A program made the translations under genes and the position numbers. Shown here in pieces: positions 45,748 through 46,317 of a DNA stretch of 64,000 nucleotides. Every line of letters starts with the position of its first letter. Position 1 is the stretch's first letter. Below the pieces are notes generated by a model that was not told the origin of the DNA, did no database searches, and saw nothing but the letters and a program-made list of their open reading frames with translations. The DNA is from Heteronotia binoei (taxonomy: Eukaryota). The stretch spans positions 23,498,001 through 23,562,000 of the forward strand of contig NC_083230.1 in assembly GCF_032191835.1 (NCBI RefSeq), given 5' to 3'.

Positions 45748-46317
45748 AGATTTCAGGTTTTCACGGCTGGTAACATCATTAGGGTTTGTAGAATCTTTCG
45801 GGATCAAGTGCCATGTTCTACTGGAGAAAGTTTTCCTTCCAGGGCTGCTGGAGAGCTGCTATTTCTACCAAGATTGGTACCCAGCTCTGCAAAACACCCT
45901 ACAGACTGTAAATTGCAGAAAGTCTCAGAACAACTAGCACATTCCACAGAACAATCAGCACAGTCAACAACCATCTTCCTTATCTTCACATCCCTTCCAA
46001 CCCTCCCAGCAATTAACACAGAACAATGGTCATATTCAACAGCCAGTTTCCTTATCACTATCCTTCCAGGAAGCCCCACCAAACAATGGGCACATCCACA
46101 AACCAATTGCCCTTTCATCACACCCTCTCCAGCCTAGAAATAGCAGCTTTCCAGCAGCCCTGGCCCCACTCAATGCACGGCAGCCAAGAAGGTCTGAGCG
46201 CCTGCTCCGGCTGCAACGCCACTGAGGATGTTCTCCGCAGCTGAGAACGAAACGTCTGGAAGGAAAACTTTCTCCAGTAGAACACGGCACTTGATCCCGA
46301 AAGATTCTACAAACCCT
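45748..46317 (+). mobile_element. 5'-truncated Penelope-like element with inverted pLTR segment
   Basis: 62-nt inverted repeat 45781-45842 / 46256-46317 (1 mismatch); 26-nt inverted repeat 45842-45867 / 46135-46160; ORF-end-like DWYPALQN; hammerhead motif. Confidence 0.85.
46219..46259 (+). ncRNA. Minimal type I hammerhead ribozyme
   Basis: CCA-CUGAGGA-U-GUUCUC(cgcagcu)GAGAAC-GAAA-C-GUC-UGG: intact core, 6-bp stem II, palindromic ACGU stem III, 3-bp stem I; predicted cleavage after C46256. Confidence 0.8.

Follow-up and report, generated by a model that had tools for sequence, protein, structure and literature searches.

The insertion analysed here occupies positions 45744–46318 of the window, the 64-kb stretch of DNA under study, and is of a known kind: a head-to-head insertion of a Poseidon-type Penelope-like element (PLE) with a tail on one side only. 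The composite is two-armed, measures 575 bp and is bracketed by a perfect 10-bp target-site duplication, TTTCTTAATA. The left copy of the duplication (45734–45743) is identical to the right copy (46319–46328) and adjoins the composite directly; on the right, a single G (46318), which is either extra or derived from the target, stands between the end of the element and the duplication. The flanks read G-T-TTTCTTAATA on the left and G-TTTCTTAATA on the right. The target is AT-rich, in agreement with the reported preference of the PLE endonuclease (PMC11167929). Since the perfect duplication surrounds the composite as a whole, it points to one insertion event.

The inverted arm (45744–45867) is made up of three parts, all on the minus strand: (i) a 37-nt tail (45744–45780), the optional 3' extension of the element, which is found in this arm only and whose reverse complement follows ...CCCT; (ii) an inverted copy of the 3' body of the element, i.e. 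of the segment behind the predicted cleavage site (45781–45842, mirroring 46256–46317 over 62 nt with 1 mismatch); and (iii) a second inverted piece (45839–45867, mirroring 46135–46163 over 29 nt with 1 mismatch). The forward counterpart of the second piece (46135–46163, plus strand) was located by repeat search and is the proposed acceptor of a template switch. The two inverted pieces have a 4-nt microhomology in common, CCAG at 45839–45842 (equal to CTGG), and CTGG is present both at 46160–46163 and at 46256–46259; the second piece consists of 25 unique nucleotides plus these 4, and it skips the 92–96 nt that hold the hammerhead. The forward arm (45868–46317, plus strand) is a 5'-truncated pLTR/3' end of the element without the tail and ends in ...ACAAACCCT. 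A preliminary description of the locus had given the tail as a 33-nt extension that is absent from the right-hand copy, and the second inverted piece as 26 nt long (46135–46160). The forward arm indeed lacks the extension and the switch to a second piece is present, with the lengths amended to 37 nt (45744–45780) for the former and to 25 unique plus 4 shared nucleotides (46135–46163) for the latter.

The inverted arms, of 62 and 29 nt at 97–98% identity, are far beyond chance. Both arms of the composite carry the minority variant 46295T/45803A, and they differ at two sites only (46149 and 46285), at each of which one arm has a private change as judged from the family reads described below. The mismatch at 45813, which mirrors 46285, represents a CpG-to-TpG change private to this copy, the family reads having G there. 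The common minority variant, together with the presence of only two private substitutions, therefore indicates that both arms came from the same source. This copy differs from the family majority at about 2–3% of positions. BLAST found no other copies of the element within the 64-kb window. Three degenerate direct repeats of ~49 nt (45936–46116), with a spacing of 60–72 nt and 63–76% identity, are located within the pLTR body on the upstream side of the hammerhead.

The plus strand at 46222–46256 contains a putative minimal type-I hammerhead (min-HHR) of PLEs, recognized by reading the sequence and by a motif scan, for which self-cleavage is predicted after C46256. Its parts follow one another in the order CUGAGGA (46222–46228), a bulged U (U46229), helix II, GAA (46249–46251), ACGU (46252–46255) and C17 (C46256), and a GUC triplet is found at 46254–46256. 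The conserved core (C3-U4-G5-A6-N7-G8-A9, G12-A13-A14, A15.1-U16.1 and H17) is fully present, with A46252 and U46255. Helix II is formed by 6 bp (GUUCUC/GAGAAC, 46230–46235 with 46243–46248). Helix III is a palindromic ACGU without loop 3, which allows a dimer, and in a dimeric model of the hammerhead all pairs would be canonical, as verified by a pairing check. Helix I has 3 contiguous pairs only (46219–46221 with 46257–46259). The min-HHRs of PLEs have no loop 3, a palindromic helix III that can pair between two copies, a long helix II and usually a bulged base, and a helix I of 2 bp is on record for D. virilis (Cervera and de la Pena 2014). The hammerhead models of Rfam gave no match at the gathering score, nor at E-values up to 10, a negative result, albeit the expected one for motifs without helix III.

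The hammerhead overlaps the beginning of the PLE ORF, whose first 30 codons, identified by translation, span 46228–46317 on the plus strand; the ATG is located at A9 of the hammerhead, and the predicted cut falls after nucleotide 29 of the ORF. The frame is open through the body and the tail (42 codons with the tail). The ORF for reverse transcriptase (RT) and endonuclease is absent from this copy, the 5' truncation leaving the first 30 ORF codons. A protein search with the 32-amino-acid start of the ORF retrieved tandem-repeat proteins only and no PLE, a word search with a spurious 72-amino-acid ORF over the pLTR gave no match, and a search for exact 20-mers in contigs of metagenomes, viruses and prokaryotic genomes returned 0 matches.

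The motif scan of the window also yielded a second min-HHR motif, belonging to a different PLE family, at 9683–9716 on the minus strand. This motif comprises CUGAUGA, a bulged A, a 7-bp helix II (GUGUGCU/AGCACAC) with the loop UAAG, GAA, a palindromic AGCU helix III and U17. It has one arm only, no inverted counterpart being present within 4.5 kb. Further sequences resembling structured RNAs in the window are the tRNA-like heads of a SINE family at 20682–20753 (plus strand), 57343–57414 (plus strand) and 36542–36613 (minus strand), all three of which score as tRNA in Rfam and have broken acceptor stems, and a shortened 7SK-like sequence at 27852–28047 (plus strand, 43.6 bits) with large internal gaps, which is probably a pseudogene.

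The family to which the insertion belongs was characterized by mapping two raw RNA runs (X21 and X22) and two contig sets onto 45600–46460 at 80% likeness. Neither flank had any read depth, whereas 45744–46318 was heavily covered, and all reads must therefore stem from other copies of an abundant family. Family sequences cover 45868–46317 and stop at both flanks. Reads and contigs that leave the forward arm at 46317 continue with AATGATGTTACC, which is the start of the tail extension; this was seen 73 times in X21, 187 times in X22 and in 320 contigs of X14, a contig set from a relative. At the opposite side of the composite, loose ends at 45742–45744 run into flanks that are unrelated and mutually different, and the end at 45744–45780 is for this reason a genuine family terminus. 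The extension is a regular alternative 3' terminus of the family, carried by other copies after ...CCCT, and no novel sequence; an optional tail of 30–40 bp is a published feature of PLEs (PMC11167929, PMC8557442).

The same mapping defines the inner boundaries of the composite. Upstream of 45868 the family reads continue with a different sequence on which they agree (0.97 agreement), so that 45868 is the true 5'-truncation point of the forward arm. Over 45832–45860 the depth was 7–25, compared with 100–370 alongside; the junction is therefore private to this locus rather than a variant of the family, and arose at or after integration. A subfamily lacking the hammerhead was considered as the source of the inverted arm and ruled out, as the family depth collapses across 45832–45860.

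The landmarks of the element were compared by eye with the Repbase consensus (File S1 of Frangieh et al. 2024, PMC11167929) of Poseidon_Ac (PAc), a PLE of the Penelope/Poseidon clade from Anolis carolinensis (Arkhipova 2006; Frangieh et al. 2024, PMC11167929). The hammerhead of Poseidon_Ac has the form CUGAGGAUG...GAAACGUC, as it does here, and in both elements the ATG of the ORF lies at hammerhead A9 and the cut comes after ORF nucleotide 29; the Poseidon_Ac unit ends with ...CUGAGG and restarts with AUG...GAAACGUC, which is the layout of the present copy. The body ends with ...ACAA(C)CCCT in both cases (...ACAACCCT in truncated insertions of Poseidon_Ac and ...ACAAACCCT at 46317 here), namely at nucleotide 85 in Poseidon_Ac and at nucleotide 90 here, and the optional tails are ~34 nt and 37 nt long, respectively. 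An AT-rich target and the lack of an RNA-seq discontinuity at the cut are further points of agreement. The two nevertheless represent different families: they are unlike in helix II, in its loop and in most of the pLTR, and the present locus holds only a two-armed fragment of 575 bp without the RT/endonuclease ORF.

The composite also agrees with the architecture described for PLEs in general (Evgen'ev and Arkhipova 2005; Craig et al. 2021, PMC8557442), which includes 5' truncation and an inverted 5'-truncated copy that abuts a forward copy. A tail at one end only and a hammerhead in the pLTR are likewise common to both, and the combination of an inverted, 5'-truncated copy with a tail at one end is a typical PLE structure (PMC8557442). 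In contrast to these generic descriptions, the inverted arm at this locus is in two pieces between which precisely the hammerhead is missing, the donor end coming to lie at the scissile bond.

Overall, the data make it likely, with a probability of roughly 80%, that a single retrotransposition of an abundant Poseidon-type PLE gave rise to this head-to-head (fold-back) insertion. Both arms begin at genuine 3' termini of the family, the inverted one with the tail and the forward one without it. The PAc protein cleaves and extends both strands, and its RT starts at two adjacent internal sites, which delimit the tail (PMC11167929). Nicking and extension of two strands, as seen for PAc, would therefore explain the head-to-head arms; two-strand priming has been demonstrated in vitro for the Anolis element only (PMC11167929). 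For the present locus, we infer two-strand priming and the following order of events. The GIY-YIG endonuclease would nick both strands of the AT-rich target, 10 bp apart. The 3' end of the bottom strand would prime reverse transcription at the first internal start site, hence without a tail, and the resulting cDNA of 450 nt would extend to 45868. The 3' end of the top strand would prime another cDNA from the neighbouring start site, so that the 37-nt tail is included. This second cDNA would copy the tail and 61–62 nt more (98 nt), by which it reaches the scissile position of the hammerhead, then leave the template, re-anneal through the CTGG/UGG microhomology 96 nt upstream and copy a further 25 nt. 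Finally, the two cDNAs would be joined bluntly, without microhomology, at 45867/45868. No published model specifically predicts the blunt joint at this position or the extra hop.

A related mechanism is the twin priming that reportedly underlies inversions of L1 elements (a proposal attributed to Ostertag and Kazazian, 2001), in which both target strands are said to prime cDNA. The two cDNAs are reportedly joined, often at microhomology, inside one target duplication; the second primer is said to anneal internally on the same RNA, by which the inverted part becomes an internal segment of the element. Unlike in L1 twin priming, both arms at the present locus begin at the element's own RT start sites, which places two 3' ends head to head. 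A snap-back of the first cDNA on itself was also considered and ruled out, as the inverted arm has the tail and the forward arm is without it.

The preliminary description had further stated that the inverted segment begins at the predicted cleavage site, and its inner end can in fact be placed exactly at the scissile bond. Owing to the 4-nt overlap (CTGG) of the two inverted pieces, the junction may be positioned anywhere within a 4-nt window that holds the cut after C46256; the junction interval, 46255–46260, contains the scissile bond. A microhomology of at least 4 nt has a probability of P = 0.016. Among direct repeats of at least 4 nt in the element, the donor interval contains the scissile bond in 0.9–2%, a value that refers to one locus and to a microhomology null. 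A switch at that very base fits a roadblock formed by the folded hammerhead, a chance jump at microhomology and a template that had been cleaved beforehand. The skipped 96 nt were also inspected as a possible intron, which was ruled out because no placement in the 4-nt window gives GT...AG or CT...AC ends.

A pre-cleaved template would mean that the RNA copied into the inverted arm had been cut by the hammerhead, and that the RT ran to the 5' end at U46257 and jumped by means of UGG. We regard this as plausible but less likely than not. The cleavage would plausibly be assisted by protein within the RNP, and the junction would in that case record, in DNA, the activity of the ribozyme during integration. 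The position of the junction speaks for it, the interval holding the scissile bond with a chance of 0.9–2% under the microhomology null; on the other hand, it concerns a single locus chosen after the fact, and chance can explain it. The hammerhead of PAc cleaves only when the PLE protein is present, which makes cleavage in the integration complex plausible, but hammerhead mutants insert normally in vitro, where RNA that has not been processed serves as the main substrate, and in Anolis the cut site is not an end point of any reads (PMC11167929). An RNA starting at +30 would keep the region that is needed in vitro: the shortest active 5' truncation of PAc RNA is +20, and the first 172 nt contain the binding motif (PMC11167929). 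The microhomology itself argues against a run-off at a cleaved end in two ways: its fourth base (C) is on the far side of the cut, and it shows a switch driven by annealing, which equally fits a stalled, uncleaved RNA or a later deletion by slippage.

A precedent for a ribozyme cut site that shapes 5' junctions is provided by R2, a non-LTR element with an HDV-like ribozyme (Eickbush et al. 2013, PMC3774820). The logic is the same as that of a cleaved template here; the ribozyme class, the element class and the type of junction differ, and the link in R2 was drawn from many junctions and from in vitro mapping of the cleavage (PMC3774820), as compared with one locus in this work. The literature searched contained no report of inverted-arm ends at a hammerhead cut.

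Ends at the cleavage site were sought in RNA and in contigs. With one fifth of the local depth as the threshold for a pile-up, neither X21 nor X22 showed an accumulation of read starts or ends at 46256/46257. The RNA depth was flat across 46209–46295, and the loose ends of RNA reads at 45842 correspond to the reverse complement of the uncleaved hammerhead continuation. In the set of 30,316 contigs of a relative (X14), no loose end at 46257 was present among the best-supported ones listed, which leaves fewer than 59 contigs possible at the cut versus 501 at the 3' end. The fold-back joints listed in X14 were scattered, with mirror positions at 46300, 46296, 46288, 46276, 46274, 46273 and, once, 46256. 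One X14 contig joins 45842 to 46173, and this counts in favour of a cleaved template. The contigs being short, the loose ends and joints listed in X14 exclude only a share above ~12% of copies with ends at the cut. The proposal in the preliminary description that the end of a self-cleaved RNA had been copied is unsupported so far, given that the CTGG microhomology fits an uncleaved template equally well and that no pile-up of RNA read ends was seen at the cut.

The gap in the inverted arm could also have arisen after insertion, by loss of 96 bp from an arm that was initially uninterrupted from the tail to the equivalent of 46135 and included the hammerhead, through slippage between the CTGG repeats. 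Slippage would be favoured by the hairpin-prone palindrome and by the 4-nt direct repeats at the ends of the deletion, and the copy is not brand new, being ~2–3% off the family majority with two private substitutions in the arms. Such a deletion requires the same 1–2% coincidence with the scissile bond, and the sequence holds nothing that separates slippage from a switch during reverse transcription; we consider it improbable. An assembly artefact, or the chance abutment of two independent nested insertions, is very improbable: assemblies are known to have difficulties with inverted PLE structures (PMC8557442) and the flanks of the locus have no depth in the mapped runs, but the perfect 10-bp duplication brackets the composite exactly, the outer ends are canonical family termini and the arms carry the same minority variant.

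Under the preferred reading, a single head-to-head retrotransposition, the locus is a well-resolved natural counterpart of the two-strand priming and of the two start sites (tail) observed in vitro for the Anolis element, and it is useful as an illustration rather than as a discovery. The coincidence with the ribozyme site is suggestive and provides a testable lead; as a footprint of cleavage it is neither established nor refuted. The function of the hammerhead in endonuclease-bearing PLEs was called unclear by Craig et al. 2021 (PMC8557442), and cleavage was found to be dispensable for insertion in vitro and invisible in RNA-seq by Frangieh et al. 2024 (PMC11167929). It seems unlikely to us that protein-assisted hammerhead cleavage in the PLE complex makes the 5' end of a short template for priming from the top strand. 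If it did, inverted arms, and perhaps solo fragments of ~60–100 bp, would preferentially begin at the scissile bond, and if cleavage set the end of the second-priming template, the hammerheads of PLEs with an endonuclease would have a first in vivo role, and one that can be read from genomic junctions. A genome-wide pile-up of inverted-arm ends at the scissile bond would turn assemblies into a cheap in vivo read-out of ribozyme action and would parallel the story of R2 and its HDV-like ribozyme. A pile-up of breakpoints at the GUC alone would not separate cleavage from a structural roadblock.

The mapped sequences and the surroundings of the insertion revealed a few further features. The differences of the RNA reads over 45744–46318 were mostly A>G (62 and 67 places in X21 and X22, respectively) and T>C (41 and 51 places), with far fewer A>G differences in the DNA contig sets (1 and 5 places), and the consensus of one loose end had three clustered A-to-G changes in the hammerhead. 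The excess of A>G could reflect ADAR editing of fold-back PLE transcripts, or simply decay of this copy together with variation between copies. In the contigs of the relative (X14), tandem duplications ('goes back 49/53') with short variable fillers are present in many family copies at 46150–46214; the duplicated stretch is hairpin-forming and immediately precedes the hammerhead. Downstream of the PLE insertion, at a distance of 1.1 kb, begins a near-perfect nested palindrome of ~277 bp (47464–47740), with arms of 86 nt at 93% identity and inner arms of 51 nt at 75%. It is followed by another hairpin-like inverted repeat (47808–47946), the 64-nt arms of which are 80% identical and 11 nt apart.
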